Shown: positions 28,175 through 52,130 of the stretch, in pieces
Layout: every line of letters starts with the position of its first letter
Position numbering within the stretch: the first letter of the stretch is position 1
From: Hyalangium minutum
GTDB lineage: Bacteria > Myxococcota > Myxococcia > Myxococcales > Myxococcaceae
DNA: 64,000 bases
Reading direction: 5' to 3'
Assembly (NCBI RefSeq): GCF_000737315.1
Contig: NZ_JMCB01000017.1
Span: forward strand, 1-64,000
Position numbers and translations under genes: made by a program
Notes under the pieces: model-generated
Seen by the model: the letters and a program-made list of their open reading frames with translations, nothing else
Databases searched by the model: none
What the model was told of the DNA's origin: nothing

Positions 28175-29217
28175 GACGTCCGACTCCGTGGACTCCCGTC
28201 CGTGTCTTGAGACTCCATCGCCACCCTCAGCACGACAGCCGCCGCCTGGTAGAGCTCTTCGGGGATCTGCTCCCCGACGTCGTAGTGGATGAGGCTGCGC
28301 GCCAACGGAACGTCCCGAACCACTGGGATTCCGCGGCGTTGCGCCTCCCGCCGGAGCGCGAGCGCATCCGCCTCCTGGCCCTTGGCAACGAGGTAGGGCG
28401 CCTCGCACTCTTGGGTGTCGTAGCGAAGCGCGACCGCGATGTGCGCAGGGTTAACGACCACGGCCGTGGCCTTCTGCACTCCACGTGCCGGGCCCCCCTG
28501 CGCGAGCTGCCGGTGGAGCGCCTTCCGCTGGGCCTTGTGGTGCGGATCGCCTTCGCTCTCCTTGTACTCCCGCTTCACCTCCTCGCGGGTCATCATCAAG
28601 TCCTGGATGTGCCGCCGCCGAGCCAGCGCGTAGTCCGTCACTCCCAAGAGGAGCAGCACCCATGCCAGGCGCATCGCCAGCGGCGCGAGCTGCCCCACAA
28701 GCTGACTGAAGCCCGCGGTTCCCTCGAGCCACACCGCGAGCAGAGCGTCCGGGCCGGTCTTCTCCACCTCGTTCCACACCAGCGCGACGACTACGCCCAT
28801 CACCGCCAGCGCCTTCGCCACCTCGATGAGCGACCGGACGCTAAAGAGTCGCTTCAGGCCCGCGGCCAAGCTGATGCGCTCCAGCTTGGGCGTCACGTGG
28901 TCCAGGTTCAGCTCGAAGCCCACCGTGGCCACGGACACCGTGAAGGACGCAACCAGCGCCCCCCCCAGAGCGGGGCCCGCCAGCCGCGCCCACATCCACA
29001 GTCCCTCTTCCATCCAGGTGGAGGAACTCGGATTCCGCAGCAACTGGGTGGTCCATTCCTTCAGCCGCTCGAAGCCCTCGGGCGCGAAGGCGGTGAGGGC
29101 GAGCAACCCTCCCAGGGTCACCGCGCTGGCGGACAGCAACCGGCTCTTGGGAATCTGTCCCTTACGGCGTGCATCGCGCAGGCGCTTTGCCGAGGGTTTC
29201 TCCGTCTTCTCACTCAT
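28171..29217 (-). CDS. sctU: type III export switch protein SctU (FlhB family); cleavage loop reads NPAH
   Basis: SEKTEKPSAKRL, MTREEVKREYKESEGDP, VVVNPAHIAVALRY, IPEELYQAAA. Confidence 0.93.
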   Translation of the reverse strand: MSEKTEKPSAKRLRDARRKGQIPKSRLLSASAVTLGGLLALTAFAPEGFERLKEWTTQLLRNPSSSTWMEEGLWMWARLAGPALGGALVASFTVSVATVGFELNLDHVTPKLERISLAAGLKRLFSVRSLIEVAKALAVMGVVVALVWNEVEKTGPDALLAVWLEGTAGFSQLVGQLAPLAMRLAWVLLLLGVTDYALARRRHIQDLMMTREEVKREYKESEGDPHHKAQRKALHRQLAQGGPARGVQKATAVVVNPAHIAVALRYDTQECEAPYLVAKGQEADALALRREAQRRGIPVVRDVPLARSLIHYDVGEQIPEELYQAAAVVLRVAMESQDTDGSPRSRTS

Positions 29218-30008
29218 CGCGCCGCATCCCCCATCCACCGCAGCGCCTCATCCACCCCCACCACTCCCGCCAACAGCCGTTCGCAGAGCACCCCGACCCC
29301 GAGCCACACGAGCGCGCCGCCTCCCAGAATCCGCAGCGGCGCGCCCAGGTCCTGGAGATTCACCTGAGGAGCCGCACGCGACGCCATGCCCATCAGGCAA
29401 TCGACGGTCAGCACCGCTGCGGCGATGGGCGCCCCAACCGCCAGCCCTGTCGCCATCGCGCCGCCCGCCAGTGTCACGACATACAGCGCCGCAGCCTCCG
29501 AGGGCACAGCCGCTCCCAACCGCACCACTCCAAAGCCCCGCAGCACCCCGGAGAGAACGAGAGGAAACAGTCCTCCCGTCACCACCAGCGTCACGAGGAG
29601 TTGGTACAGGCCATCGCCAGTGGCCGACTCGCGACTCCCAGCCATGGGCAAGCTGGCTTCAGCGGAGGTGCCTCGAAAGAGATCGATGAACCTCCCACCC
29701 ATCCTCGCCGCATCGAACGGCAGCGCAGCGATGAGCCCCACCGAGGTCCCGTAGACCATCTCCTTGAGCACGAGCGCCCCCAGCGTCACCGGCGTCTCCA
29801 CGGGCGCATCCACTCCCACTCCCGCAACGAGATGCAGGAAGAGCGAGAGGCTCAGCACCAGGGCCAGCTTGACGGTGGTAGGCGCGGACTGCCCGCCCAA
29901 GAGCGGACAGAGAAAGACCACGGGCAGCAAGCGCGACGCACACAGCGCCACCGAGACAATGTGCGGTCCCAGCAGTTCAATCTGGGCACGAAGAAGCTCG
30001 AGGTTCAT
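29214..30008 (-). CDS. sctT: type III export protein SctT (FliR family)
   Basis: Polytopic hydrophobic protein, GRFIDLFRG, RAAPQVN; position in the R-S-T-U-V run. Confidence 0.88.
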   Translation of the reverse strand: MNLELLRAQIELLGPHIVSVALCASRLLPVVFLCPLLGGQSAPTTVKLALVLSLSLFLHLVAGVGVDAPVETPVTLGALVLKEMVYGTSVGLIAALPFDAARMGGRFIDLFRGTSAEASLPMAGSRESATGDGLYQLLVTLVVTGGLFPLVLSGVLRGFGVVRLGAAVPSEAAALYVVTLAGGAMATGLAVGAPIAAAVLTVDCLMGMASRAAPQVNLQDLGAPLRILGGGALVWLGVGVLCERLLAGVVGVDEALRWMGDAAR

Positions 30009-30274
30009 ATCGCCACCTCGGCAATGGCCATGAGCAGCTGGTGGGTGAACCGCGTGAGCTGCCCGGCAATCCATGGCCCTGCGAGCACCAGCGCCAGCAC
30101 CGCAGCGCACAGCTTGGGCACCACGGACAGGGTGCTCTCCTGAATCTGCGTGGTGGCCTGGAACAGGCTCATGACGAAGCCCACCGCCAAGCTCGCACCG
30201 ATGGGAGGCAGGGAGGCGAGGACCATCAGGAGCAGGGCCTCACGGCCGAGCGACAGCAGCACATCCTGGGTCAT
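30005..30274 (-). CDS. sctS: type III export protein SctS (FliQ family)
   Basis: 89 aa, FQATTQIQESTLSVVPKL, GPW. Confidence 0.92.
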   Translation of the reverse strand: MTQDVLLSLGREALLLMVLASLPPIGASLAVGFVMSLFQATTQIQESTLSVVPKLCAAVLALVLAGPWIAGQLTRFTHQLLMAIAEVAI

Positions 30275-30278
30275 GGCA

Positions 30279-31004
30279 TTACCGGTAGCCGAGGATGAGC
30301 CCACGGGCGAGCAGCGACCAGCCATCCACGGCGACGAAAAGGAGGATCTTGAAAGGCAGACTCACCTGGCTCGGCGACAACGTCTGCATGCCCAGGGCGA
30401 GCAGGACGTTGGCGATGACCATGTCGAGCACGAGGAACGGCAGGAAGATGAGGAAGCCAATCTGAAACGCCTCCTTCAGCTCGGTGATGACGAAGGCGGG
30501 GATGACCACGAAGAGGTCGCCCTCATGGACTTGTTCCATCTCCTCGGGAGGCCGCAGCTCTCGCGCAAGCTCCACGAAGAGCGCCCGCTCCTCGGCGCTC
30601 CCATGCTTCACCAGGAAGGCGCGCAGCGGGTCCGTCACCTGGACCGCCCCGTCGAAAATCTGTGCCCCTGATTCCATCTGTGGGTAGACGCGCTGGCCCG
30701 CGTCGTACATGCGCTCCATCACCGGAGACATGATGTGCGCCGAGAGCACCGCCGCGAGCCCCGTCAGCACGATGGTCGGTGGAGCCTGCTGCGTCCCCAT
30801 CGCCGAGCGCGCGAACGACAGCACCACGGCGATCTTCGAGAAGCTCGTCAGCAGCATTACCGCGAAGGGCACCAGCGACAGCACCGCGAGCATCGCCATC
30901 ATCGCCAGCGGATTGCCGGCAGAGGAGGCCTGCAAGAGGGTCTTCTCGCCAGCCAACGCCCACGCCGGCGTCAGGAGGCAGCCCACCCAAAGTCCCCGCT
31001 TCAT
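30279..31004 (-). CDS. sctR: type III export protein SctR (FliP family) with N-terminal signal peptide
   Basis: TSFSKIAVVL, QQAPP, PAFVITELKEAFQIGF, LPFKILLFV.VDGW. Confidence 0.95.
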   Translation of the reverse strand: MKRGLWVGCLLTPAWALAGEKTLLQASSAGNPLAMMAMLAVLSLVPFAVMLLTSFSKIAVVLSFARSAMGTQQAPPTIVLTGLAAVLSAHIMSPVMERMYDAGQRVYPQMESGAQIFDGAVQVTDPLRAFLVKHGSAEERALFVELARELRPPEEMEQVHEGDLFVVIPAFVITELKEAFQIGFLIFLPFLVLDMVIANVLLALGMQTLSPSQVSLPFKILLFVAVDGWSLLARGLILGYR

Positions 31005-31372
31005 CGCTCCACCCCCTCTGGCTGCATCGAGGGCGACTCGTGGATCTGGGCGAACGAGTCCCCAAAGGCCACGAGGAAGCTGCGGCCATCTGCCTCCACC
31101 AGCGCAATGCCACAGCGCTGGGAGAGTCCTGCACGGGAAACCACCTTCAAGCGTTCGGGGAGCGCGAACTGGGAGCTTGCTCCACCACGGCGCCACAGCC
31201 ACCACCCCAAGCCCCCGAGCGCCACGGCCCCCAGAAGCCACCGAGCCACCCCCGCGACAGACAGGCCCCCTAGAGGTGCCAATGCCGCGAGCCCCAGAAT
31301 GAGCCCGCTCGCAAGCAACAAGCGGTGCCGAGGAGAGAGAGAAGCAAGCATGACGTTTCTCCGAGCACTCAC
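31001..31372 (-). CDS. FliO-like small bitopic membrane protein
   Basis: TM segment(s), then LKVVSRAGLSQRCGIALVEADGRSFLVAFG, which resembles the FliO cytoplasmic motif; lies between sctQ and sctR with overlapping start/stop codons. Confidence 0.65.
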   Translation of the reverse strand: MSARRNVMLASLSPRHRLLLASGLILGLAALAPLGGLSVAGVARWLLGAVALGGLGWWLWRRGGASSQFALPERLKVVSRAGLSQRCGIALVEADGRSFLVAFGDSFAQIHESPSMQPEGVER

Positions 31373-32520
31373 GGCAGCAGGTTAAGGATGCGAGCACCGA
31401 CCTCGCCGTCGATGTCGACCAGCTCGGCGCGGGCCACCGCCCGCTCACCGATGCGCAGCAGCACCGGCTCGCTGGCGTTGATGCGCAGCGGAAGCAGCGC
31501 GCCCGGCTTCAGCCCGGCCAACTCCGAGAGCGGCAGCATCAGCCGCGTCAGCTCGATCTCCACATCCACGGGGAGCGGAGGCATTCCTCCGCTCTGCTCA
31601 GTGACGGTTGCCATCTTCGACTCCAAGGGAAGTGCGCGCCTGCGCGCGCGGGTCAGGGAAAAACCTTCGGGGGTGAACTCACCCATCAGCTCAAAGCCGT
31701 GTGTGACCAGGCGGCCCTCACCGAGGAGGTACTCGCCGCCATGCCGGGCGGCCTCGAAGACGACGACATCGCCCACCGACAGCCTCTTGAGCGACGAAGG
31801 TGGAAGCTGGGTGTGGCCCAGGAAGCACCTCGCACCGAGAGCTGCCGCGAGGATCTCCGAAGCGATGAAGGCCTCCCGCTCCACGGGCAGGTCCTTGAAA
31901 GCGGACTCGAAGAGCACAGCAGGGACGAGCAACCGACCTCCAGCCGTCACCTCTCCCACCGACAGAGACAGCTCCACTCCGAGGTGGGGCCGCCGGCTCT
32001 CCAGCCGCCCCAGCGCCTCCACCCGGCTCATCGTCACCCCTGCCAGCCGAGGTCCCAGCCGGCGGTGGAGCTCGGACCTCCCCCGAAGCGCCGCGAGTGC
32101 AGAGAGGACCAAAAAGGCGAAGGTCGCTTCTTCCAGGCGCGTGAACCGCCTCACGGGGCTCGGCCGCGGGTTGCTGCCCGCGAGGCGCTCCAGCGCGGCG
32201 AAGAGCACCGGCACCTCCAACTCCAGCACCGCACAGCCCCCTGTCGCGGACAGGTCCAGCAGGACGAAGGCCGTCGCATGGGCCAGCCCTGCGTTGGGAA
32301 TCACCGTGGACTCTGAGAGCCGGCCTGTGATGCGGACGGTGCTCCCGAGTTCCTTTCCCAAGACCTCGCAGAGGCTCTGGAGCGCTTGCGTTCCCCAGCC
32401 TGCCACTTGGGGACGCTCGCTCAGCATCACATGTGCCCGGGCCAGTCGGCGCGTGCCGAGCCGGTTCAGCTTGGCGATCTTTTGAAGCGATGACGGGGTA
32501 CTGCGGGGTTCGGTGTGCAT
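31369..32520 (-). CDS. sctQ: SctQ/FliM-FliN-like C-ring (sorting platform) protein
   Basis: Two SPOA-like segments (LSVGDVVVF; LPVDVEIELTR...LKPGALL...AELVDIDGEVGARI). Confidence 0.8.
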   Translation of the reverse strand: MHTEPRSTPSSLQKIAKLNRLGTRRLARAHVMLSERPQVAGWGTQALQSLCEVLGKELGSTVRITGRLSESTVIPNAGLAHATAFVLLDLSATGGCAVLELEVPVLFAALERLAGSNPRPSPVRRFTRLEEATFAFLVLSALAALRGRSELHRRLGPRLAGVTMSRVEALGRLESRRPHLGVELSLSVGEVTAGGRLLVPAVLFESAFKDLPVEREAFIASEILAAALGARCFLGHTQLPPSSLKRLSVGDVVVFEAARHGGEYLLGEGRLVTHGFELMGEFTPEGFSLTRARRRALPLESKMATVTEQSGGMPPLPVDVEIELTRLMLPLSELAGLKPGALLPLRINASEPVLLRIGERAVARAELVDIDGEVGARILNLLP

Positions 32521-32538: not shown

Positions 32539-33048
32539 TCAGCGCGTGGCCTCGCGAACCAAGCGCTCAGCCAGGGTGCTCATCGCTGGAGAAACCGAGG
32601 CGTCCGGAGCCTCCAGTCGACGCTGGGGAAAGAGGGTGCGGTGGTACGGTGGCAGCTTGCGGAAGATCTCCCGCCTCAGAGCTTCGGGGGCCTCCGCCAT
32701 CAGCTCACGAAGTTGCTCCGCAGGGTCACTCCGCAGCCCGAACTCCAGTGCTACCCGGGCCTGCCGCTGTGCCGAGGTCATCGCCGCGAAGTGGGCCAGG
32801 TGCTCCTTTGCCCGCGCGGCCTCGCTCTCGCCCAGTCCCTCGAGCAGCTCCGAGGCCCGCTCCTTGCCGAACACCCGCGCCACCAGCGCGAACCGCGCCA
32901 GCGGCAAGAAGGTGGGAGGGGCCTTCACAGCCCGCACAGGTGTGGGCGGCGACTTCTGCTTGGGCAGTGGCCTGCGGGTGATGCGAGTGGCTTGCTCGGA
33001 GCGGTTCTTCGCCACCGGCCTCCGCACGATCCGTGTGACCTCCTCCAT
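32539..33048 (-). CDS. hypothetical helical protein in the sctK position (SctK/FliG-like candidate)
   Basis: Directly downstream of sctJ, predicted helical; homology not demonstrated. Confidence 0.5.
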   Translation of the reverse strand: MEEVTRIVRRPVAKNRSEQATRITRRPLPKQKSPPTPVRAVKAPPTFLPLARFALVARVFGKERASELLEGLGESEAARAKEHLAHFAAMTSAQRQARVALEFGLRSDPAEQLRELMAEAPEALRREIFRKLPPYHRTLFPQRRLEAPDASVSPAMSTLAERLVREATR

Positions 33049-33068
33049 GGAGCATCCTCCCCAGCAGC

Positions 33069-33872
33069 TCAAGCCACACGGCGTGCCGCATTTGCGGCGA
33101 CCACGGGCCGGGCAGGAACAGGCGGAGCGACCGGCGGCGTCATCGCCTCGGACTGGTCGTTCCGCAGCCGCAATGCGAGGAACACCAGCGCCACCGCCAG
33201 GGCGGTGAGCACCACGCCCATCACCACCAGCAGCACCCGCAACCTCATGAGGGGTGAGCTTCCGGGAACGGTCACCTCCACACGCGTGGATGCCTCATCC
33301 ACCATCAGTGCCACGGAGTCCGGTGACAGCCCCTCCACGCCTCCCGCGATGAGCGCCCTCAGCTGCTCCTGGGCCTGGCGGATCCGCGCCGCCTGCCCCG
33401 GTGCCGTGCGCAGCATCGCCGAAGCCTTCGCGGGCGCCGACGCCTGTCCCGGGCGCGGCGGGGGCGGCACCATCAGATGAACCCGCGCCAGGAGCACCCC
33501 ATCCACGCCCTGGAGCGTCTTCTCCACGCCCCGCTCGAGCACCCGGCCCCGGCAGAGCTGCTCCTCGACGGGAGAGCGGATGAGCCCGCCCCCTCCAAAT
33601 ACATCACAGCCCATCTCCTCCGCGGGCCTCGGCAATCCCAGCTCCGCCAGGATGCGGACGGCGTCCGAGGCCTGGGCCTCTTCCACCTCGATGGCCCAAG
33701 TGGGCTTCTTGCCCGCCTCCGGGACCTTGCGTGCATCCAGTCCCCGCTCGGCGAGGACTGTCTGCAGCTCGTTGGCCTGGCGCTCATCGAGCCCATGCTG
33801 AATGCGCTCCCGGCACGCGGCGGTGCACAGGAGCATGAAGAGACAGAGACAGCGGCGAACAGCGAACGTCAT
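33069..33872 (-). CDS. sctJ: SctJ (YscJ/PrgK/FliF-N) inner-membrane ring lipoprotein
   Basis: Lipobox TAAC, GLDERQANE, L.ELGLPR, VDGVLLARVHL, ASAML, C-terminal TM. Confidence 0.9.
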   Translation of the reverse strand: MTFAVRRCLCLFMLLCTAACRERIQHGLDERQANELQTVLAERGLDARKVPEAGKKPTWAIEVEEAQASDAVRILAELGLPRPAEEMGCDVFGGGGLIRSPVEEQLCRGRVLERGVEKTLQGVDGVLLARVHLMVPPPPRPGQASAPAKASAMLRTAPGQAARIRQAQEQLRALIAGGVEGLSPDSVALMVDEASTRVEVTVPGSSPLMRLRVLLVVMGVVLTALAVALVFLALRLRNDQSEAMTPPVAPPVPARPVVAANAARRVA

Positions 33873-33883
33873 GGCGAAGCTCC

Positions 33884-34369
33884 TCAAATCTGGGTCTGAA
33901 GCACCTGCTTCACGCCGCTCGTCGCCTTCTCGACGACCTTCCCAGCCAAATCGAGCTGCTGGCTGGCGGCGTACACGTGGGCCTGGAACGCGAGCAGCTC
34001 GGCCGGAGTGAACGTCCGGCCCGACTCCGCCAGCGCGAGGACGAGGTCCAGCCGCTTCTGCGCCTGGCTCACCCGATCCAGCACCTGCACGACCTGCTGA
34101 GCCCTCGCTGACTGCACCGAGTCCACCCGCGCCCCAGGCGTCACCTCCGCCCGGCCCGCGGCTGCTCGCTCCACGCTCTGGACATGGCGCGGCCCTCGCA
34201 CCGCTTCCGAGGGAAACGGACGCTGCGCTCCCTCCGTGGACACGGGAATGCCTGGCCCTCGCTCCGGGCCCTTCACCCCTTGAAGCACCTTGCCGAACTG
34301 CTGCTTGCCGGTCTCCAGCGCGGGAGTGGCTCCCGCACCGCCGACCGAACCCACCTTGTCGATCGCCAT
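33884..34369 (-). CDS. SctI-like inner rod protein
   Basis: C-terminus PAELLAFQAHVY...LDLAGKVVEKATSGVKQVLQTQ fits the YscI/HrpB2/EscI pattern; gene lies directly before sctJ. Confidence 0.65.
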   Translation of the reverse strand: MAIDKVGSVGGAGATPALETGKQQFGKVLQGVKGPERGPGIPVSTEGAQRPFPSEAVRGPRHVQSVERAAAGRAEVTPGARVDSVQSARAQQVVQVLDRVSQAQKRLDLVLALAESGRTFTPAELLAFQAHVYAASQQLDLAGKVVEKATSGVKQVLQTQI

Positions 34370-34379
34370 GACGCCGCCC

Positions 34380-34883
34380 CTACCGGATGTTGTTGATGGC
34401 GGCCTTCGCCGAGTCGTGGCGGACCTTCATGATGTTGGAGACCGCGTTGTGCTCACGGCTCTCCCGCTGCATCTCGTTCTGGAGCTGCAGGTACGCCATG
34501 TTGAACTTCTGCCCCTCGGCCGCCATGAGCTTCTGAGCCTCGAGCAGGTCCCACGCCTCGCCCTTCCCCGCCGTCCCCCCGGCCGTTCCCGTGCCACTGG
34601 TGCCTCCCGAGGCACCGCCGACGCCTGGGATCGGCACGGTGGCGCCACCCGTTGATGGCACGGTCGTCGGCACCGAGCTCACGGTCGACGCCACAGAGCT
34701 GACGCTCGAGACCGCCGCGCTCAGCACCGGTCCTCCGGGAAGCACCCTGCCAACGAGGCCTGCTCCCGTCGTCACGATCTCTTGAGCGGTGCGCGCGAGC
34801 ACGGCACCGAACTCGTTCTTCGGTGTTTGCCGCAGCTGGGTGGGGGTGATGGACAGCGACGCGATACGGTTGTTGTTCTCCAC
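34380..34883 (-). CDS. putative SctF-like needle/filament subunit with N-terminal extension
   Basis: Last 33 aa align ungapped to the PrgI C-terminus (12 identities, PrgI sequence from memory); GTG start with AGGAGG RBS; lies directly before the sctI-like gene and sctJ. Confidence 0.6.
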   Translation of the reverse strand: MENNNRIASLSITPTQLRQTPKNEFGAVLARTAQEIVTTGAGLVGRVLPGGPVLSAAVSSVSSVASTVSSVPTTVPSTGGATVPIPGVGGASGGTSGTGTAGGTAGKGEAWDLLEAQKLMAAEGQKFNMAYLQLQNEMQRESREHNAVSNIMKVRHDSAKAAINNIR

Positions 34884-34919
34884 GAAAAGCCTCCTGGTTG
34901 AGCTGCGCCAGGAGCCCTT

Positions 34920-34936
34920 TGCGCTTCCCGTGCCAA
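34920..34936 (-). promoter_or_regulatory. sigma54 (-24/-12) promoter of the T3SS operon
   Basis: Minus strand TTGGCACG-GGAA-GCGCA: perfect -24 element, GG-N10-GC spacing, predicted start near 34909, 26 nt before the GTG. Confidence 0.6.
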
Positions 34937-35113
34937 CACCCGTTCTCAGGAAAGTCGCGGGTTTATCCGCACCGCCCCCCGTGAGGGAGTCCACCGAGCC
35001 CCATGGACCGTCCATGGCGCGAGACGGTACCCGTCCGCAGGTTCCGCCCTCAGGTACGAACGAGAGGCCGCCTCCTCCCAGGACCGGGCAGGAGCAGGCC
35101 GGATCTCTGCTTT

Positions 35114-35470
35114 CTACGCGGACATGGCGGCCAACAGCAGGTCGATGTCGAGCGGCTTATGGAGGTAGGTGCGGGCGGCGAGACTTTCGCGGTGGTTGTC
35201 GAGATGGGGATCGGCGCTCATCACCACCACCGGGATGTGGGCGATTCGCGGGTTGGCTTGCTGCTCGGAGCGGAACTGAAAGCCGTCCTTCACGGGCATC
35301 ATCAAGTCCAGGAGGATGACGTCCGGAGGCTGCCGCATCGCTTCGAGCTCCGTGAGCGCGTGGGCACCGTTCTCCGCGGAGAACACGGTGTGGCCCTCGC
35401 CCTCGAGCAGCTCGCGAACGGACTCGCGTATGTAGAGGTCATCCTCCACCACGAGGATGCGCCGGCTCAT
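35114..35470 (-). CDS. single-domain response regulator
   Basis: ILVVEDD, LLDLMMP (phospho-Asp), VMSA, LHKP; ATGA overlap with the kinase. Confidence 0.9.
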   Translation of the reverse strand: MSRRILVVEDDLYIRESVRELLEGEGHTVFSAENGAHALTELEAMRQPPDVILLDLMMPVKDGFQFRSEQQANPRIAHIPVVVMSADPHLDNHRESLAARTYLHKPLDIDLLLAAMSA

Positions 35471-38400
35471 GCCGGGACTCCTGAAGCGCTGGGGAGGCTC
35501 CCGGACCACGCGTGCGAGGCATCCCTCGGCAGGCGGACGACGAAACGAGCGCCGCCTCCCTGAGGGCTCTCCACCGTGATCATCCCGCCGTGGGCACGCA
35601 CGATCTGCCGGGAAATGAAGAGGCCGAGCCCGAGCCCGCCGACGTTGCGCGAGGCGATACCACGATCGAAGCGGTCGAAGATGGTGTCGTGCTGCGCCTC
35701 CGGAACCCCAGGCCCAAAGTCGCGCACCTCGATGCGGACATGGTCCCCGTCCTCCAAGAGGCGGACATCGAGGGGCACGCCCGGCGCGTACTTCATCGCG
35801 TTGGAGATGAGGTTGGTCAGCACCTGCTCGAGCCGGCGCGCATCCCATACCCCCAGGAGCCTGGGCGGAACCTCGAGCTGTATCCGGCAACCCGCCTGGG
35901 TAAGCTGGCCCGAGAGGTGCTCCAGCACGTCGCGTGCGAGCTGGGCGAGGTCAGCCGGCGCGAAGGCAAGGTCGATGTTCCCCGAGCGGATCCTCGCCAC
36001 GTCGAGCAGATCGTTGATGAGGCCCGTCAGCCGGTCCACCTGGATGGACGCGATGCGCAGCACCTTCGCGAGCTTCTCCGGGCTCGGGGCGCGGCCCTCC
36101 TCGGGCTTCACGCTCCGCTCGGTCATCTGGAGCTGCATCCGGAGCGAGGTGATGGGTGTCTTCAGCTCGTGCGAGGCGATGGAGAGGAACTCGTCTCGCG
36201 AGACCAGCAGGCTCTTCAGCTCCCGCTCGACCCGCTTGAGGCGCGAGACGTCTTGGAAGGTGATGACGGACCGCGGCGGCTGCTGCCCGATGGCAGGAAC
36301 GAAGCCAGAGTCAACGACGAGGTTGAACCGCCCCGCTTGCGAGTGCCAGACCACCTCCATGTCGCGGACTCGCTCACCGCGCAGGACACGGCCCCCCGGC
36401 GACTGCTCCAGATCCATCGGGCGATCGGCCTCGTCGGTCAGGCGGAACGCCTGGCTACGCTCTGCGGCGTCGATGTTGACGGGAAAGCGTCCGCCGGCGA
36501 GCTGGTGGGCAGCGCGATTGGCGAAGGTGAACTGCCCCGAGCCCGGATCGACGAGGAGGGTTGGGGCGGGAATGTGGTCGAGCACCGCCTCGAGCCACTG
36601 CTGCTGCTCCGCGAGGTTCGCCATCCGCGCCTGCTGCTCCGCCGCCTGCATCCGCAAGGCCGCCATGCTGAGCTGGGCGTGCACCCGGGCGAGGAGCTCC
36701 TTGGCCGCGAACGGCTTCGTCAGGTAGTCATCCGCCCCGAGCTCGAGCCCGCTCGCGGTGGCCTCCTCTCCTGCGCGAGCCGACAGCAAGATGACCGGTA
36801 GCGTGTGCAGCGCGTCGTCCGCCCGCAGCCGCCGCACGAGCTCGGTGCCATCCATCACCGGCATCATCACATCCGAGAGCACGAGGTCCGGCCGCGACGC
36901 CCGAGCCGCCTGGAGCGCCTCCGCCCCATTCGTCACCGCTGTCACCTGGTAGCGCCCTTCCAGGAGGCGGCGGACGTAATCGCGCATGTCGGCGTTGTCG
37001 TCGGCGAGCAGGATTCGCGGGCGTGGGCCCTCCGTCACGATCCTTCCCTCAGGCTCCTGATCGGGGAGCCAGCGCAGCGCTTCCTCGACGAAAGCCTCGG
37101 CGCGGACCTCGGTGGAGGCCAACCGCTGTGCATGAATGGGCGCCGGACCCAGCCCCCGGGGGACCTCTCCCAGTGGGACGCGCACCAAGAAGGTCGAGCC
37201 TTCACCGACGACGCTCCGCACCTCGACCGAGCCACCGTGGAGCTTGGCAAGGTCCTGCACGAGTGCGAGGCCAATGCCGCTGCCCTCGTGGGTGCGCCCC
37301 TGTGCTCCCTGCACCCGGTGAAAGCGCTGGAACACCCGTCCCAGCTCGCTCTCTGGAATGCCAATGCCCGTGTCCCGCACCGACAGCTCCGCGAACCCAC
37401 CCGCCCGGCTCAGGCTCACCCGGATCTCGCCCGCCTGAGTGAACTTGAACGCGTTCGACATGAGGTTGAGGACGATCTTCTCCCACATGTCTCGGTCGAC
37501 GAACACCGGCTCCCCGAGCGGCTGAATCTCCACCACGAGACTCATGCCCGCGCGCTCGATGGCCGAGCGGAATGCGCTCGCGAGGTCGCGGGTCATCGCG
37601 GCCAGGTCAATGGGCTCGAAGGTGGCCTGGGCTCGGCCCGCCTCGATGCGCGAGAAGTCGAGCAGCGAGTTCACCAGCTTGAGCAAGCGGAGCGCATTGC
37701 GGTGCACCGTCTCGAGCTCGCCCCGCGCGGCGTCCGGCAGCGCCCCACGGCGGCCCGAGAGGAGATCCTCCACCGGCCCGAGCAACAGCGTGAGCGGCGT
37801 CCGGAACTCGTGGCTCACATTGCTGAAGAAGGCGGTCTTCGCCCGGTCGATCTCGGCGAGCGCCTCGGCCCTGAGACGCTCCTCCTCGTACGCACGGGCG
37901 TTGCCGAGCGCCGCGCTGGCCGCCGCGCCCAGCATCTCCACGAATGCCTGATATGCCTCATCGAGCGGCAGCCGCGGGCTTGCTGCGACGACGAGGAAGC
38001 CCAGCGGCGCGGCCACCCCGGCGACCCGGATCTGCAGGACGAAAGCCTTCGCCACCGGCTCCGGATAAGCCCCTGCGGGGACTGGCCCGAACCGAGTCTC
38101 CAGGTTCGTGACCAGCTCGGCCCGGCTGCTGCGCGCCGCCTCCGCGAGGGGCCATCCCCCGCTCCCGTTGCCCTCCGCGAGGTGAATCACCTCCGGCGCG
38201 AGGGGCCCACCCGCCGGCGTCCCACACGCGCCTCGAAGCCGTGCCTGGGTCCCGTCCGGGCTCGTCACGTAGAGAAGCGCGAACGGCAGATCAAAGGCGT
38301 ACTCACCGAGCGTCGAGAGGAGAAGCTCACACGCCTCGTCGAACACCGACGCCTGGCCCGCGCGATTCGCGATGTCCCGCAGCGCCCGCGTCCGCCGCTG

Positions 38401-38883
38401 GGCGAGCATCGTGGTGGTCGTCTCGGTCACTGGGTGAAAGAGCCCCACCACCTTCCCGGACTCGTCGCGGATGGGGCTCAACGAGAAGGTGAAGAACGTC
38501 TCCTCCGGGTAGCCGTTGCGCTCGAGGAACATCCGCTGGTTCTCGAGGAACGTCGTCTCCCCGGCGAGCGCACGCTCGAAGGGTCCGCCGATGGCTGGCC
38601 AGGCGGACGCCCAGGTGACACGGTAGTCCTCGCCCATCGCGCGTGGATGCGCTGCGCCACACGCCACGCGGTACCCATCGTTGTAGATCTGGTTGTGGCC
38701 GTCGCCCCAGATGATGTTGATTGGAAAATTCGAGGCGAGGCAGAGACTGACGGTGGTCCGCAGGCTCAGGGGCCAGGCCTCAATGGGTCCGAGGGGCGAG
38801 CGCGACCAGTCGAGCGACGCGATAAGCGCCGCCATTTCGCCGCCTCCGGCGAGCCATTCGAGACTCCTCGGGCCTGTGCGCAT
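35467..38883 (-). CDS. hybrid sensor kinase: PAS-like, GAF, HisKA/HATPase, REC, PAS, second HisKA/HATPase
   Basis: SHEFRTP and SHELKTP H-boxes, two N/G-box sets, receiver LSDVMMP. Confidence 0.92.
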   Translation of the reverse strand: MRTGPRSLEWLAGGGEMAALIASLDWSRSPLGPIEAWPLSLRTTVSLCLASNFPINIIWGDGHNQIYNDGYRVACGAAHPRAMGEDYRVTWASAWPAIGGPFERALAGETTFLENQRMFLERNGYPEETFFTFSLSPIRDESGKVVGLFHPVTETTTTMLAQRRTRALRDIANRAGQASVFDEACELLLSTLGEYAFDLPFALLYVTSPDGTQARLRGACGTPAGGPLAPEVIHLAEGNGSGGWPLAEAARSSRAELVTNLETRFGPVPAGAYPEPVAKAFVLQIRVAGVAAPLGFLVVAASPRLPLDEAYQAFVEMLGAAASAALGNARAYEEERLRAEALAEIDRAKTAFFSNVSHEFRTPLTLLLGPVEDLLSGRRGALPDAARGELETVHRNALRLLKLVNSLLDFSRIEAGRAQATFEPIDLAAMTRDLASAFRSAIERAGMSLVVEIQPLGEPVFVDRDMWEKIVLNLMSNAFKFTQAGEIRVSLSRAGGFAELSVRDTGIGIPESELGRVFQRFHRVQGAQGRTHEGSGIGLALVQDLAKLHGGSVEVRSVVGEGSTFLVRVPLGEVPRGLGPAPIHAQRLASTEVRAEAFVEEALRWLPDQEPEGRIVTEGPRPRILLADDNADMRDYVRRLLEGRYQVTAVTNGAEALQAARASRPDLVLSDVMMPVMDGTELVRRLRADDALHTLPVILLSARAGEEATASGLELGADDYLTKPFAAKELLARVHAQLSMAALRMQAAEQQARMANLAEQQQWLEAVLDHIPAPTLLVDPGSGQFTFANRAAHQLAGGRFPVNIDAAERSQAFRLTDEADRPMDLEQSPGGRVLRGERVRDMEVVWHSQAGRFNLVVDSGFVPAIGQQPPRSVITFQDVSRLKRVERELKSLLVSRDEFLSIASHELKTPITSLRMQLQMTERSVKPEEGRAPSPEKLAKVLRIASIQVDRLTGLINDLLDVARIRSGNIDLAFAPADLAQLARDVLEHLSGQLTQAGCRIQLEVPPRLLGVWDARRLEQVLTNLISNAMKYAPGVPLDVRLLEDGDHVRIEVRDFGPGVPEAQHDTIFDRFDRGIASRNVGGLGLGLFISRQIVRAHGGMITVESPQGGGARFVVRLPRDASHAWSGSLPSASGVPA

Positions 38884-39046
38884 ATCGAGTTCCGCTCACG
38901 GAGGCTATGCATCCAGCGCTGGGCCCGCAAGGCGGCCAGGAGCAAGTCAATACGGCCCAGGGGTGAACCCGCGCCCGAAAAGTTGCGTCCTCGGCTCCCT
39001 GCCTCAGACTGGTTGCGACCTGTTGCACCGAGGAGAGACCCCGAAC

Positions 39047-39370
39047 ATGACGCCCGCCCCCAATCCCCGTCAGGCTGAGCGCTTCCACCCTCGCGTGGAG
39101 GCCAACCTCGTGGTGAAGGTCCTCCTGCCGGGCCGCACCGTCGTCGCCAAGGCCCGCGACCTGTCCATGGCCGGCCTCTTCCTCCACGCCCAGCCCGCGG
39201 ACGCGCTGCGCGAGCTCACGCTCTCCCTCCCCCTGAACGGAGACCGGGAGATCGTCGTCAACTGCACCATCCTCCGCCGCGAGGCGAATGGCGTGGCGCT
39301 CGAGTTCGGCACGCTCGACTGGGATGACTTCCTCGCCCTGGCGCGCTTCCTCCACCCGCGCCTGCCCTGA
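39047..39370 (+). CDS. stand-alone PilZ-domain protein
   Basis: RFHPR (RxxxR) and DLSMAG (DxSxxG) c-di-GMP motifs; RBS GAGGAG. Confidence 0.85.
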   Translation: MTPAPNPRQAERFHPRVEANLVVKVLLPGRTVVAKARDLSMAGLFLHAQPADALRELTLSLPLNGDREIVVNCTILRREANGVALEFGTLDWDDFLALARFLHPRLP

Positions 39371-39382
39371 GCGGGCCGGGGC

Positions 39383-39781
39383 TCAGCTGGGCAGCAGAGC
39401 CGCGCGCAGCCGGTCCACCAGCTCCATCAGCTCCGAGCTTCGGAAGGGCTTGTGGATATAGCCGTCCGCGCCCGCCTTCGTGGCGATCTCCACATCCGCT
39501 TTGTTCGCCTTGCCGGTGAGCATGTAGACCGGGACGCTCGCCGTGGTCGGCTCGCTCTTGAGGATGCGGCACACCGTCACCCCATCCATCTTCGGCAGCA
39601 CCACGTCCATCAGGATGAGCTGGAAGGCGCGCGTCTTCGCCAGCTTCAGCCCCTCGATGCCGTCCTCCGCGCACACCACATTCACGGTGTCATCGCTCAG
39701 CATCGAGCTGACGAGCTCCCGGATGACGGGCTCGTCCTCGACGAGCAGGATGTGGAACTTGGTGGTGGATTCAGCGGCCAT
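39383..39781 (-). CDS. single-domain response regulator
   Basis: ILLVEDE, LMDVVLPKMDG, MLTG, IHKPF. Confidence 0.9.
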   Translation of the reverse strand: MAAESTTKFHILLVEDEPVIRELVSSMLSDDTVNVVCAEDGIEGLKLAKTRAFQLILMDVVLPKMDGVTVCRILKSEPTTASVPVYMLTGKANKADVEIATKAGADGYIHKPFRSSELMELVDRLRAALLPS

Positions 39782-39815
39782 GGCTCGGATCACCTGCACT
39801 ATGACAGATGGGGGG

Positions 39816-42383
39816 CTACTCGTAGGCGAGTGCCTCGACGACGTCCAGCGCCGCCGCCCTTCTTGCGGGATACAGACCTGCGACCGCAGCACACAATGTG
39901 GCCGTTAGGGACATCTGCAGCGCGACTCCTGTCGGGAAGACATACGGAAAGCTCCACCCCAGGGATTGCTCGCTCACCATTTGAGTGATGATCCCCCCCA
40001 GCACCGTGCCCGATAGGACTCCAATGAGTCCTCCTGACAGGCCGATGAAGGTGGCCTCACCCACGAAGAGCCACAGCACGTGGGACTTCGCCGCCCCCAC
40101 CGCCCGGAGCAGGCCAATCTCCCGCGTCCGGTCCAGCACCGCCGCCAGCAGCGTGTTGATGACCCCGAGCAGCGCCAGCAGCACCGCCACGGCCTCCATC
40201 GCGTAGGTCACCGTGAACGCGTCGTCGACGAGCGAGGTGGCCTCGTGGCGAAGCTCACTGTGGGACAGCACGTAGAGGTTGTACTGGCGCCCGTGGGCCT
40301 CGGTGATGGCGCGGCGCACTTCCTCCAACCTGCTCAGGTCCGTCAGGTACGTCTCGAAGATGTCCACCTGCCGGTCCTGGAAGTGCGCCATGTAGACGTC
40401 CCGCGAGAGCACCAGGGTGCCCTGGTCCGAGGTGTAGTCCATCGCCACGGCGCCCACCGTATAGGTGCGGACACCCGTGGGCGTGGACATCTCCACGGTG
40501 CTCCCCACGTGCAGGCCGCGGCGGCGCGACAGGTTCTCGGAGATGATGACGCGCCCCTGGCGCCACTCCTCCGGCGTCAGCATGCGGCCCTCGAGGAAGA
40601 GGGGCTTCGCCCGCTGCTCGTAGATCTCGGGAATGAGCGAGATGACGTAGGCCCGCAGGCCCAGCACGTCGTGAGGAAGGATGCGCACGCGATCCACTCG
40701 GTCCACGCCCGGCAGCTTCTCGATGGCGTCGCCCAGTTCGGGCCGCATCGGCTGGTTCTGCACGCCCGCTGTCCTCGCGGACGAGGTGACGAAGAGATCC
40801 GCTGGCACCGCCTGGTTGATCCACCGCTGCGTCGACTCGTGGAACGAGCCCACGAACCCCGCGATGCACACCGCCATGGACACGCCCACGGCGAGCGCCG
40901 ACACGGGCACCGAGGTCCGCACCGGCGCCCGGGCGAAGTTGTCCGCCGCGAGCCTTCCGCTCACGCCCAGCAGCCGCTCGCCCGGCCCTCGGTAGACGTA
41001 CCAGAGCCCGCGGAGCAGCGTGGGCGCCAGCAGCGTGGAGCCCATGAGCACCAGGAAGATGCCCAGGTAGCCTCCCACCGGCAGGTTCTCCACCGGAGGT
41101 GGCAGCCGCGCCAGCGGATACACCGCCGCGAGGCACCCCAGCCCGGCCCATTGCGCCCAGGACTTCGTGCTGCCCACCTGCACGCCCGCCGCCGCGTCCT
41201 TGCGCAGCGCCTCCACCGGCTGCACCCGCGAAGCGTGCAGGGCCGGCCACAGCGCCGCGAACGCACTGCCCAGGACCCCGAGCGCGATGCCCAGCCCCAG
41301 CTCGAGCGCGGTGATTGTCACGTCTCGCGCGTTCACCTTCACATAAAGGCTGGAGATGGACTGGGAGACGGCACCGATGGCGCCCCGCCCCACCAGCGCC
41401 CCCAGTGGCAGCCCAAGCGCCGTACCCAGGGCGCCCAGCATCATCGCCTCCAGGGTGAACAAGGCCCGGATGCGCAGGCGCGAGGCTCCCAGCGCTCGCA
41501 GCGTGCCGATCTCCCGCCGACGCTGCACCACGCTGATGGAGATCGTGTTGTAGACGAGGAACACCCCGACCAGCAGCGCCACCCCAGAGCCCAGGTTGAG
41601 CCCCATCTGGAAGCTGCGGACCATGGTCTCCACCGAGCTGCCACGCCGCGAGGGACGCTCCACCTCGAACGCCGGCCCCAGCGCCTTGCGAAGCCCCTCA
41701 CGCACCGCCTCCACGCCCTGCTTCGGGTCCACCGCCACGTCGATGCGGTCCAGCACCCGGTCCCGCCCGAACGCCGCCTGGGCCGAGGCCACGTCCATCA
41801 CCGCCACCGAGCCACCGAACGCCTTGATGGGCCCGGACTCGCGGATCAGCGCGTGCACGATGAAGTCCTGCGCCCCGCTGGAGGTCATCAGCCCGAAGGT
41901 GTCTCCCACCTTCAGCTGGTGCTCGCGGGCAAAGCGCTCGGACACCAGCAGCCGATCCGTCGAGTTGAGGAACTCCAGGTCCTCCGTCAGCGCGCGGAGG
42001 TCTTTATCCACGCCCTCGTAGGTGCGGAAGTAGCCGTCATCCAGCAGGTCCACGCCCATGACGTAGAGGGACTCGCCCGGAGCGTTCTGCACCGGCGCGA
42101 CAACGGAGAGGCCACCCGACGCATGCAACACCCCGGGCACTTTCCGGACTCGCTGGAGGACCTCCTCGGGAAAGCCGACCTGCGAGCCTGCCACCGTGAG
42201 GTCCGCCTTCCCGGCGATGGTGTCCACCGTGGAGCGGAACGCCTCCATCACCGAGCGGTTGATGGCGGTGACGCCCACCATCGTCGCCACGCCCACGGCC
42301 ACTCCCACCAGGGTCAGGGCGGTGCGCAGCGGAGCCTGCAGCAGGTGCCGCAGCGAGACGAGTCTCAGCAGAGGGAGGAACAC
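39816..42383 (-). CDS. ABC transporter permease, MacB/FtsX type (duplicated architecture)
   Basis: LRTALTLVGVAVGVA; two RRREIGTLRALGA / RTREIGLLRAVGA FtsX motifs; YPARRAA..D.VEAL.YE. Confidence 0.92.
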   Translation of the reverse strand: MFLPLLRLVSLRHLLQAPLRTALTLVGVAVGVATMVGVTAINRSVMEAFRSTVDTIAGKADLTVAGSQVGFPEEVLQRVRKVPGVLHASGGLSVVAPVQNAPGESLYVMGVDLLDDGYFRTYEGVDKDLRALTEDLEFLNSTDRLLVSERFAREHQLKVGDTFGLMTSSGAQDFIVHALIRESGPIKAFGGSVAVMDVASAQAAFGRDRVLDRIDVAVDPKQGVEAVREGLRKALGPAFEVERPSRRGSSVETMVRSFQMGLNLGSGVALLVGVFLVYNTISISVVQRRREIGTLRALGASRLRIRALFTLEAMMLGALGTALGLPLGALVGRGAIGAVSQSISSLYVKVNARDVTITALELGLGIALGVLGSAFAALWPALHASRVQPVEALRKDAAAGVQVGSTKSWAQWAGLGCLAAVYPLARLPPPVENLPVGGYLGIFLVLMGSTLLAPTLLRGLWYVYRGPGERLLGVSGRLAADNFARAPVRTSVPVSALAVGVSMAVCIAGFVGSFHESTQRWINQAVPADLFVTSSARTAGVQNQPMRPELGDAIEKLPGVDRVDRVRILPHDVLGLRAYVISLIPEIYEQRAKPLFLEGRMLTPEEWRQGRVIISENLSRRRGLHVGSTVEMSTPTGVRTYTVGAVAMDYTSDQGTLVLSRDVYMAHFQDRQVDIFETYLTDLSRLEEVRRAITEAHGRQYNLYVLSHSELRHEATSLVDDAFTVTYAMEAVAVLLALLGVINTLLAAVLDRTREIGLLRAVGAAKSHVLWLFVGEATFIGLSGGLIGVLSGTVLGGIITQMVSEQSLGWSFPYVFPTGVALQMSLTATLCAAVAGLYPARRAAALDVVEALAYE

Positions 42384-42901: not shown

Positions 42902-43594
42902 TCAAGCAGCCTGACTGCTGACTCGCTCATCTCCTACGACGAGACCATCCGCCAACCGGACGATCCGGTCTCCCACCTCCGCCGCCCGGGGGTCATGGGT
43001 GACCATCACCACCGTCAGCTGGCGCTCGCGTGTCGCCTCCCTGAGCAGGCGGAGGACCTCGGTGCCCGTCTTCGAGTCCAGGTTCCCGGTGGGCTCATCG
43101 GCCAGCAGCAGGGCCGGCTCCGTCAGGAGGGCCCGGGCCACCGCCACGCGCTGCATCTCCCCTCCGGACAGCTCGTCCGGCCGGTGCTGGGAGCGCCCGC
43201 GCAGGCCTACCGTCTCCAGCAGCGCCTCGGCGCGCGAGAGCATCTCCGCCCGAGGCCGGCCCGCCAGCAGACCCGGCAACATCACGTTCTCCACCGCCGT
43301 CAGGGTGGGCATCAGGTTGAAGAACTGGAACACGAAGCCCAGCCGCTCCCGCCGGAAGGCCGAGAGCGAGGTGTCATCCATCCGCGCCAGCTCCTGACCG
43401 CCAATCCGGATGCTCCCACCCGTAGGCACATCCAGCGCGCCCAGCAGGTTGAGCAGCGTGCTCTTCCCGGAGCCCGAGGGCCCCATCACCGAGAGGAACT
43501 CCCCCCGAGGCACCGTCAAGGACACGCCCGCCAGCGCCCGCACCTCCGTGCGGCCTCGGCGGTACACCTTCGTTGCCTCGTGGACCTCGATCAT
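42902..43594 (-). CDS. ABC transporter ATP-binding protein (LolD/MacB type)
   Basis: GPSGSGKS, LSGGEMQRVAVARAL, LLADEPTGNLDS, VTHD; ATGA overlap with the BatE-like gene. Confidence 0.95.
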   Translation of the reverse strand: MIEVHEATKVYRRGRTEVRALAGVSLTVPRGEFLSVMGPSGSGKSTLLNLLGALDVPTGGSIRIGGQELARMDDTSLSAFRRERLGFVFQFFNLMPTLTAVENVMLPGLLAGRPRAEMLSRAEALLETVGLRGRSQHRPDELSGGEMQRVAVARALLTEPALLLADEPTGNLDSKTGTEVLRLLREATRERQLTVVMVTHDPRAAEVGDRIVRLADGLVVGDERVSSQAA

Positions 43595-44340
43595 ATCTCC
43601 GCTACACCCTCTCGCTCGACCCACCCCTCCAGCCCGTTGGGCAGGCGGATGCGCACGTAGCGCCCCGCGTCCTCTAGCAGCCGGATCTTCAGGCCCTCAT
43701 GCACGTCGAAGAGCACCTTGGCGTCACCCTTGGGGAGCTCGCGCGCCACCAGCGTCCGAGAGAGCACCACCGCCTCATGGAGCGTGCGCGCCACCCACAC
43801 GTGCGCTCCCAGCAGCGCCCCCGAGGGCAGCGCCACCACGAGCGCCAGCCCCGCGAGCACTGCCGCCCACGTGCGGCGGCCGGGCTTCAGGAAGTAGAAG
43901 AGCAGCAGCAGCGCGAAGGCCGCCACCCACGCTCCGAGGAACACCCCAGCCACCACCGTCTCGGGCGTGGCCTTCACCAGCCGGGTGACGAAGTCCTCCT
44001 CCACGGCGGCGCCCTCGACCTTGTCCTTCTGCTGAGCGCGGGCGAGCGCGAGGTTGGCCTCCAGGTCCGGGGCCCGGCCACCTGCCTTCCACGCGCGCTC
44101 CAGCGAGAGCACCGCACGGCCCAGGTCTCCCTGCGCCAGGTACGTGGTGCCCAGGTTGTAGAGCACGTCCGGGCCACCCTGGCCGTGGGAGATCAGCTTC
44201 TCGTAGCCCTCCCGGGCCGTGGCGTAGTCCTCGCGGGTGTAGGCCTCGTTGGCCTGGGTGAAGAGCTCCTGGGCCTCCTCGGGCGTGTAGTAGCCCTGGC
44301 CCAGCAGCGTGGCGACGAGCATGGCGGTGATGGCGCTCAC
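43591..44340 (-). CDS. BatE-like TPR + TM + SH3 protein
   Basis: N-terminal TPRs (YNLGTTY), two TM helices, SH3-like tail (HEGLKIRLLE...GWVER). Confidence 0.75.
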   Translation of the reverse strand: MSAITAMLVATLLGQGYYTPEEAQELFTQANEAYTREDYATAREGYEKLISHGQGGPDVLYNLGTTYLAQGDLGRAVLSLERAWKAGGRAPDLEANLALARAQQKDKVEGAAVEEDFVTRLVKATPETVVAGVFLGAWVAAFALLLLFYFLKPGRRTWAAVLAGLALVVALPSGALLGAHVWVARTLHEAVVLSRTLVARELPKGDAKVLFDVHEGLKIRLLEDAGRYVRIRLPNGLEGWVEREGVAEI

Positions 44341-51067: not shown

Positions 51068-51092
51068 GGGGCGTTCGGGACGGTGGCCAGGG

Positions 51093-52082
<990 letters not shown>

Positions 52083-52130
52083 GTCCCCTCGGTGGGCGGC
52101 AACGGCCGGCAAAGCCGGAAACGGCCGGGC

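Follow-up and report, generated by a model that had tools for sequence, protein, structure and literature searches.

Myxobacterial type III secretion systems (T3SSs) stand at the root of the injectisome tree and are the textbook case of such a system without secretin, needle or translocon. The locus described here raises the question of whether one of them encodes an axial subunit. It lies in a window of 64,000 nucleotides, the whole stretch of DNA analyzed (Hyalangium minutum, assembly GCF_000737315.1, contig NZ_JMCB01000017.1, positions 1–64,000, forward strand), and is a short T3SS operon whose first open reading frame (ORF), at 34380–34883 on the reverse strand, is called gene X here. A sequence-only reading had taken the product of X for a needle-like subunit akin to SctF. 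The reading we favor, with a probability of roughly 0.58, is that X, though very divergent, belongs to the SctF/HrpA/HrpF needle/pilin family and is the axial subunit of the short myxobacterial T3SS.

The needle-less character of the myxobacterial T3SS, from which the sequence-only reading had set out, is indeed what the literature describes: these systems have been reported without SctF (PMC3459982, PMC10433427, PMC12075869). Abby & Rocha reasoned that SctF, had it been there, "should have been found", and took it to have been lost (PMC3459982); reviews up to 2025 still use the term 'needle-less'. In the searchable literature, SctF occurs together with Myxococcales only in Abby & Rocha 2012, as absent, and we found there neither M. 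xanthus locus tags for the short cluster nor any earlier account of SctF in myxobacteria. Close homologues of X number 703, in Hyalangium, Archangium, Pyxidicoccus, Corallococcus, Myxococcus and Stigmatella, and all 120 of the 703 that were listed are 152–171 residues long. Because the literature reports only the absence of SctF, and because every one of these homologues is named 'hypothetical protein', we take a needle-like X to be new.

The C-terminal domain of X and the needle and pilin families

X encodes 167 residues, from a GTG start at 34881–34883 to a stop codon at 34380–34382 (reverse strand, as for every feature of X and its operon given below). Its C-terminal helical domain (residues 109–167; 34383–34559) is a conserved module of a large family. 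Within this domain, the needle-like segment (residues 131–167; 34383–34493) aligns without gaps to residues 44–80 of PrgI, the lumen-lining C-terminal helix of SctF. On re-reading, the C-terminus of X, …QNEMQRESREHNAVSNIMKVRHDSAKAAINNIR, proved to have been quoted correctly in the sequence-only reading, and the PrgI sequence used there is exactly that of PDB 2lpz chain A. The count of 12 identities over 33 residues, gapless and anchored at the C-terminus, also stands, with 11 of the identities falling in the last 22 residues. The BLOSUM62 score of this alignment is 46, a value reached by none of 200,000 composition shuffles; blastp-short gives E = 0.005–0.008, and phmmer against PrgI as a single target (Z = 1) gives E = 3e-4. 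A phmmer search of PDB sequences with X returned nothing but spurious WD-repeat and Gly-rich linker matches. At the level of sequence, the pairwise match between X and PrgI is real, yet weak taken alone.

Profile–profile comparison with hhalign places the domain on SctF in the correct register and points to remote homology. The query consisted of 63 C-terminal domains of the family, whose two main architectures are a myxobacterial one (type A) and one found in Bacteroidota (type B), and the targets were either 7 SctF sequences or 22 non-redundant ones. The comparison with 7 SctF sequences gave P = 1.7e-4, and that with 22 gave a probability of 63%, P = 7.1e-5 and a score of 26.1, with domain columns 22–58 lying on PrgI 44–80 and the alignment reaching the last residue of both. 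Type A members alone gave a probability of 73% and P = 3.2e-5; type B members alone gave P = 0.003 with the register unchanged. When the columns of the SctF alignment were shuffled 240 times, the mean score was 9.9 (SD 2.05) and the maximum 19.4, which corresponds to a z-score of about 8 for the true alignment, and the reversed alignment scored 7.9.

A database-wide scan led to the same families. When the 63 domains were compared singly with 24,736 Pfam models, the most frequently matched were T3SS_needle_F (22 of the 63), HrpF (21/63) and HrpA_pilin (13/63), followed by generic helical families, namely Arg_decarb_HB (10/63), SrfA (7/63) and Snf7 (2/63). The domain of the window matches T3SS_needle_F (PF09392) with E = 0.043 and 14.4 bits, its residues 23–57 lying on profile positions 37–71 of 71, and the best family member reaches E = 0.0081. 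The top single-family score of the window domain is that with HrpF (PF06266; E = 0.0079, residues 13–58 on profile positions 30–74 of 74), for which the best value over the whole family is 0.0018; for HrpA_pilin the best E in Pfam is 0.006. Full-length X has a single NCBIfam match, T3SS_pilin_HrpA (NF053530), with E = 0.096 and 13.1 bits over residues 56–165.

The HrpF scores bear on a different account, in which X belongs to the needle family but builds no filament and acts instead as an intracellular partner or regulator in the manner of HrpF, or as a one-turn adaptor like SctI or FliE. We consider this unlikely. HrpF of Pseudomonas syringae is, like X, a small helical T3SS protein of the needle/pilin neighborhood; it is an intracellular stabilizer of HrpA and a partner of HrpG (PMC8228185), and is described as a pilin-stabilizing, regulatory protein (PMC8228185, PMC6069116). 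The X locus also contains no secretin, ruler (SctP) or tip gene, which would leave a long needle without an obvious exit or length control. However, HrpF has 74 residues and is not described as a polymer, whereas X is the sole needle-like protein of its operon besides SctI, and the operon offers no other candidate major subunit for X to stabilize. Furthermore, X retains the lumen residues of SctF, for which a cytoplasmic chaperone would have no use, and an N-terminal motif common to X and the SctI-like protein suggests that both are export substrates. A candidate for the adaptor, moreover, already exists in the product of the sctI-like gene.

The link to SctF is reciprocal and specific. In a set of 479 family sequences and 13,105 background ORF segments, a hidden Markov model (HMM) of SctF filled the first 100 non-SctF ranks entirely with family members, which also made up 196 of the first 200; conversely, SctF sequences took 47 of the 50 top non-family ranks with the family HMM. 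We also considered whether X could be SctI, and rejected this: against a set comprising PrgJ, MxiI, YscI and PscI (the PrgJ and MxiI sequences having been checked against the PDB), the X family gave P = 0.27 and type A alone P = 0.32. It is the product of the next gene that pairs with SctI, since the myxobacterial SctI-like family gave P = 4.8e-4 against SctI and P = 0.13 against SctF. The claimed homology of the X tail to SctF is thus supported by the profile–profile, database-wide and reciprocal tests, in which the C-terminal domain behaves like a distant relative within the needle/pilin (SctF/HrpA/HrpF) family, and falls short in the single-sequence scores.

Gene order agrees with this assignment. 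In Salmonella pathogenicity island 1 (SPI-1) the order is prgI-prgJ-prgK, and in Hrp systems it is hrpA-(hrpZ)-hrpB(sctI)-hrcJ. The X gene stands directly ahead of sctI and sctJ, as the genes of SctF needles do, and with the first gene pairing with SctF, the second with SctI and the third being SctJ, the order is that of prgI-prgJ-prgK; it likewise equals that of the Hrp systems. The succession of X, a sctI-like gene, sctJ and an ORF in the sctK position, which the sequence-only reading had proposed, was confirmed in the window.

The residues shared with SctF include those expected to matter most. The SctF-invariant Q48, S62 and D70 align with Q135, S149 and D157 of X, identical in each case and at least 90% conserved in the family. 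The residues of PrgI that face the lumen are K66, K69, D70, A73, A74, Q77, N78 and R80 (PMC6625726), and they align with K153, H156, D157, K160, A161, N164, N165 and R167 of X, respectively. Five of the eight are identical (K66, D70, A74, N78 and R80) and two are conservative changes (K69 to H and Q77 to N), with 76–100% conservation in the family at these positions. The last 19 residues of X show no difference among 60 loci, whereas 12 of their 19 codons have changed synonymously, and the tail of X is therefore under extreme purifying selection.

Architecture, the wider family and points against the assignment

With the SctF needles (PrgI, MxiH, BsaL, YscF, PscF, EscF and SsaG; PF09392), X has in common, besides its gene position and the identities above, about 37 C-terminal residues that align without gaps to the terminus, the lack of a Sec signal and an extremely conserved tail. 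The Hrp pilins (HrpA of Pseudomonas syringae and Erwinia) resemble X in being longer than needles, with a conserved helical C-terminus and a variable N-terminus, and in their weak but recurrent profile matches. HrpA has no PxxP turn. Our best reading of the architecture of X, with its long variable N-terminal part and no PxxP turn, is that it is closer to the Hrp pilins than to the 80-residue needles. Hrp pili, however, cross a secretin and plant cell walls, whereas the X locus has no secretin and its host is a soil predator, and we found no counterpart in HrpA of the RQTP…FGxVL and PGxPV-SAAVS motifs of X.

A number of observations weigh against assigning X to the needle/pilin family as an axial subunit. 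Every single-sequence score is under its curated threshold: X has 14 bits against a Pfam gathering score of 29.4 bits for T3SS_needle_F, and the HrpA cut-offs (34 bits for NCBIfam NF053530 and 25 bits for Pfam PF09589) are not reached either. The hhalign probabilities of 49–73% are moderate, i.e., supportive rather than conclusive. Default BLASTP reports no alignment between X and PrgI, and a search of PDB sequences with the family profile found no needle protein and one chance match, HEN1 (E = 0.81). The architecture also differs. Needle subunits have about 70–90 residues and form a hairpin that bends at a PxxP turn, whereas X, with its 167 residues, has roughly double that length. Its additional N-terminal residues, about 108 in number, carry motifs of their own and a Gly/Thr/Ser linker, and its C-terminal domain is predicted to be one helix. 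Residues 109–167 contain no proline, so the PxxP turn is absent, as the sequence-only reading had noted. AlphaFold2 (AF2), with or without a multiple sequence alignment, predicts one continuous helix of 58 residues (109–166; predicted local distance difference test, pLDDT, 79–95) and no hairpin. The models, made from the single sequence or from an alignment of 89 sequences, are extended and non-compact, with predicted template modeling scores (pTM) of 0.27–0.29. Foldseek found no match for the monomer model in the PDB, a result that is uninformative for a lone helix in a non-compact model of low pTM.

The locus and the wider family add to these points. The system that contains X differs from those of SctF in having no secretin, tip or translocon. 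No sctN, sctD, sctL or secretin gene was found within the 64-kb window, where the scan gave Rho, a Bat/MoxR operon and housekeeping genes. Nor is a link to prey lysis, which the sequence-only reading had brought in, established for X, because the window holds the short locus and not the T3SS* cluster; T3SS*, the system tied to prey lysis, is the long cluster MXAN_2434–2464 with SctD, SctN, SctL and LcrH-type chaperones (PMC10433427, PMC12075869). In the wider family, type B genes are orphans without conserved neighbors and with no T3SS genes nearby, and some type A-like genes stand away from T3SS core genes (loci L085 and L082). The median score with the SctF HMM is 9.7 bits in the myxobacterial branch versus 1.0 bit, similar to background, in Bacteroidota. 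Since the domain is present in Sec-exported Bacteroidota proteins and on other contigs where T3SS genes are lacking in the vicinity, the module is not intrinsically tied to T3SS export.

This wider family is large. In a phmmer search of 1.84 billion representatives, the last 62 residues of X retrieved 1,050 clusters (50% identity), in which the domain always occupies the extreme C-terminus of host proteins of 48–468 residues with unrelated N-termini. Type A proteins consist of an N-terminus with NRI…RQTP…FGxV(L) and PGxPV-SAAVS motifs, a Gly/Ser/Thr linker and the domain. Type B proteins, of about 150–165 residues (P0172, P0193, P0199 and P0396–P0508; loci L086–L090), consist of a Sec signal peptide, a coiled coil and the domain, and account for about 1,585 matches in Bacteroidota (Chitinophagaceae, Flavisolibacter, Ferruginibacter and Algoriphagus). 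The type B and myxobacterial domains match each other with P = 2e-32 in hhalign. No Pfam family covers the C-terminal domain of X. By these sequence searches, the family is a large one without a Pfam model or functional annotation and with a second, Sec-exported branch in Bacteroidota.

The attachment of one domain to unrelated N-termini, the stand-alone Bacteroidota genes with their Sec signals and coiled coils and their background-like SctF scores, as well as the weak matches to generic helical Pfam families, would be expected if the likeness to SctF were convergent. X would then be a T3SS-associated protein of some other function, such as a secreted substrate or effector, that carries a general helical oligomerization module. 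We regard this as distinctly improbable. The register with SctF is fixed from end to end and includes SctF-invariant and lumen residues, beyond what heptad hydrophobics would give, and the Bacteroidota subfamily keeps that register. SctI, a helical T3SS family of similar size, gives no signal with X, and the top three Pfam families are all needle/pilin families. In addition, the position of X directly ahead of sctI-sctJ is conserved across deep Myxococcota lineages.

The N-terminal half, export and the proposed filament

The part of X that precedes the C-terminal domain comprises three regions. Residues 1–29 (34797–34883) are polar, rich in Ser, Thr, Asn and Ile, and contain the conserved RQTP…FGxV(L) motif with F25 and G26. 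Residues 25–68 (34680–34811) are predicted to form amphipathic helices and include the conserved PGxPV-SAAVS motif; AF2 places low-confidence helices at 25–47 and 55–68. Residues 69–108 (34560–34679) make up a linker rich in Gly, Thr, Ser and Pro, recognized by its composition, which varies in length and sequence among homologues and is predicted to be disordered (pLDDT below 50). Among type A proteins, R18, T20, F25, G26 and A57 are each conserved at 90% or more, and A57 is nearly invariant.

The roughly 110 extra N-terminal residues and the hydrophobic stretch quoted in the sequence-only reading are both present in X. The suggestion that they form a membrane-active domain found no support, as the N-terminal half is modeled at low confidence and the maximum Kyte–Doolittle mean over 19 residues is 1.44. 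With a maximum this low, X contains no segment of transmembrane grade, and a membrane-spanning or 'membrane-active' N-terminal domain was rejected as unsupported.

The N-terminus of X has no Sec signal. From this lack, the polar character of the N-terminus and an F[GAS]xxΦ motif (Φ being L, I, V, M or F) we infer T3SS export, with residues 1–29 as a probable type III export signal that includes an element resembling a gate-recognition motif. The consensus of that motif is FxxxΦ. In X the sequence is FGAVL (residues 25–29; 34797–34811), and the SctI-like protein has FGKVL at residues 23–27 (about 34289–34303). Near residue 25, F[GAS]xxΦ occurs in 87 of the 89 type A proteins, and 53 of 61 SctI-like neighbors have it too. 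The motif common to X and the SctI-like protein resembles the gate-recognition motif of early flagellar substrates (PMC8983047), by which flagellar rod and hook subunits dock on FlhB.

Flagellar axial proteins (FliE, FlgB/C, hook and the D0 domain of flagellin) are similar to X in two respects. In concept, their terminal helices form the channel and variable inserts point outward, and the early substrates among them carry an N-terminal gate-recognition motif that FGxxL of X resembles (PMC8983047). They differ in sequence: X gave no match to FliE, Flg_bb_rod, Flg_bbr_C or flagellin models of Pfam in any scan, and an identity of X as a flagellar rod protein, FliE or flagellin was rejected on this ground.

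The size of the N-terminal part, far larger than in any needle subunit, and the long disordered linker could also suit an exported early substrate that caps, plugs or senses the length of the SctI rod, with the needle-like tail docking in the channel and no bulk polymer being made. Such a protein would share the FGxxL motif with SctI-like proteins, as X does, and the locus shows no ruler or cap genes. Nevertheless, the linker is short (about 40 residues) and variable in length, unlike molecular rulers, and neither Pfam nor NCBIfam shows any similarity of X to the families of SctP, FliK, FlgD or tip proteins. The system would, moreover, be left with no filament to cap or measure, and we judge a role of this kind very unlikely.

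Under our favored reading, in which X is an axial subunit of the needle/pilin family, X would be exported through the SctRSTUV gate by means of its polar N-terminus and the FGxxL motif that it has in common with its SctI-like neighbor. Because its tail aligns to the lumen helix of PrgI, X may then polymerize by stacking on the SctI adaptor in such a way that its C-terminal helix lines the central channel. The amphipathic helices and the Gly/Thr/Ser linker would point outward, as is thought for the variable N-terminal half of Hrp pilins. As no secretin is encoded, the polymer would be a rod-like structure in the periplasm, unless it crosses the envelope by some other conduit; for the ancestral system, Abby & Rocha thought a structure of this kind in the periplasm conceivable (PMC3459982). 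The system may thus build a filament after all.

If a needle/pilin gene heads the short locus, this would speak for an ancestor that had SctF, with no secondary loss in the lineage, and would point to a definite candidate for the structure that the secretin-less apparatus builds in the periplasm. It would also offer a simple genetic handle on the role of the short locus in predation or envelope biology. A bolder version, which we hold to be doubtful, is that myxobacterial T3SSs are not needle-less at all: X would form an SctF-type filament decorated by its N-terminal half, and it might serve the long T3SS* in trans as well, given that the long predatory cluster is reported without a needle gene. 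Current models of predation (T3SS* and Kil pilus tips) rest on a needle-less machine, and this version, if true, would revise the model of SctF loss in the myxobacterial lineage. By extension, Bacteroidota would have borrowed the polymerizing tail for Sec-exported proteins, giving needle-like assemblies without a T3SS.

The short operon, its promoter and its surroundings

The genes of the operon follow X in the order sctI, sctJ, a 177-residue ORF, sctQ, sctR, sctS, sctT, sctU and sctV, at which the cluster stops. The sctI-like gene (33884–34369), coding for the putative inner rod or adaptor, begins 10 nucleotides past the stop codon of X and matches Pfam T3SS_basalb_I with E = 3.6e-4, short of the curated threshold. 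Next come sctJ (33069–33887; inner-membrane ring lipoprotein, Pfam YscJ_FliF, 2.9e-17) and the 177-residue ORF (32539–33072), which has no Pfam or NCBIfam match, occupies the sctK/sctL position and is kept there in most loci. The remaining genes were identified by Pfam as sctQ (31369–32520; FliMN_C), sctR (30279–31448 as ORF; FliP), sctS (30005–30325; Bac_export_3), sctT (29214–30110; Bac_export_1), sctU (28171–29238; Bac_export_2) and sctV (26084–28408; FHIPEP). By gene content, with sctJ and sctI and with neither secretin nor sctD, the window holds the 'short' locus of the myxobacterial non-flagellar T3SS (NF-T3SS) that Abby & Rocha described in Cystobacterineae (PMC3459982). They listed an ATPase among the genes common to both myxobacterial loci (PMC3459982), and no such gene was found in the window.

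The start of X is preceded by a ribosome-binding site read from the sequence, AGGAGG at 34890–34895, six bases ahead of the GTG. Further upstream, at 34920–34935 and 37 nucleotides before the GTG, lies a sigma-54-type −24/−12 element, TGGCACGGGAAGCGCA, which is the putative promoter of the operon and the sole match to the sigma-54-type pattern in the 64-kb window. Nearly all of 63 Myxococcota loci have an element of the form TGGCA(C/T)G-N4-(C/G)TG(A/G)A about 50 nucleotides ahead of the start codon, and it occupies the same relative position in loci L001–L077. This conservation upstream of X suggests an enhancer-binding protein on which the short T3SS operon would depend. A scan of 34300–35300 for sigma-70 promoters and intrinsic terminators found none. 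A longer version of X from an ATG at 35015 (211 residues) is unlikely and was rejected, because the listed homologues have 152–171 residues and the conserved sigma-54-type element would fall inside the extension.

For synteny, the genome loci of the best 80 of 461 relatives were compared, together with one further locus (L081). The order from X, sctI and sctJ through to sctV is kept in all 80 Myxococcota loci and in L081, and the 80 span Myxococcaceae, Archangiaceae and Anaeromyxobacteraceae. The closest of the 80 are from Hyalangium and other Archangiaceae and Myxococcaceae, the nearest being a Hyalangium metagenome-assembled genome (L009) in which X is 84% and the SctI-like protein 88% identical. 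As both the synteny and the upstream sigma-54-type element are conserved, X is the conserved first gene of the operon.

Two loci with X-like genes deserve mention. On L081 (10001–11305; P0159), the X orthologue is called as a protein of 434 residues that looks over-extended at its N-terminus (an Arg/Pro-rich, high-GC read-through); its conserved part, of about 150 residues, heads an Anaeromyxobacter-like sctI-J-Q-R-S-T-V cluster. On the metagenome contig L082 (10001–13306), an X-like gene for 252 residues is followed by a small chaperone-like TPR protein, an ORF of 145 residues, a sigma-70-family gene and then a SctI-like gene for 160 residues with a faint T3SS_needle_F match; no core T3SS genes lie within 10 kb.

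One flank of the operon carries a BrkB/Rrf2 gene and genes for RNase E/G, DNA ligase and Rho. On the other flank, directly upstream of X (35114–38883 and 38693–39892, with the genes that come next), are a receiver protein that stands alone and a hybrid histidine kinase of 1138 residues with PAS and GAF domains, two HisKA/HATPase modules and a receiver; response-regulator- and histidine-kinase-like sequences stand upstream of X in most loci, at a low identity of 29–40%. Beyond the kinase lie a PilZ-domain protein and another receiver protein. Further genes not related to X (42902–52112 and 53291–56485) comprise a Bat/MoxR-type operon, which encodes a MoxR AAA ATPase, a DUF58 protein, two VWA proteins (the first BatA-like), a TPR protein, BatD and a TPR-SH3 protein, then an ABC ATPase and, after these, a TPR-CHAT protein of 1064 residues.

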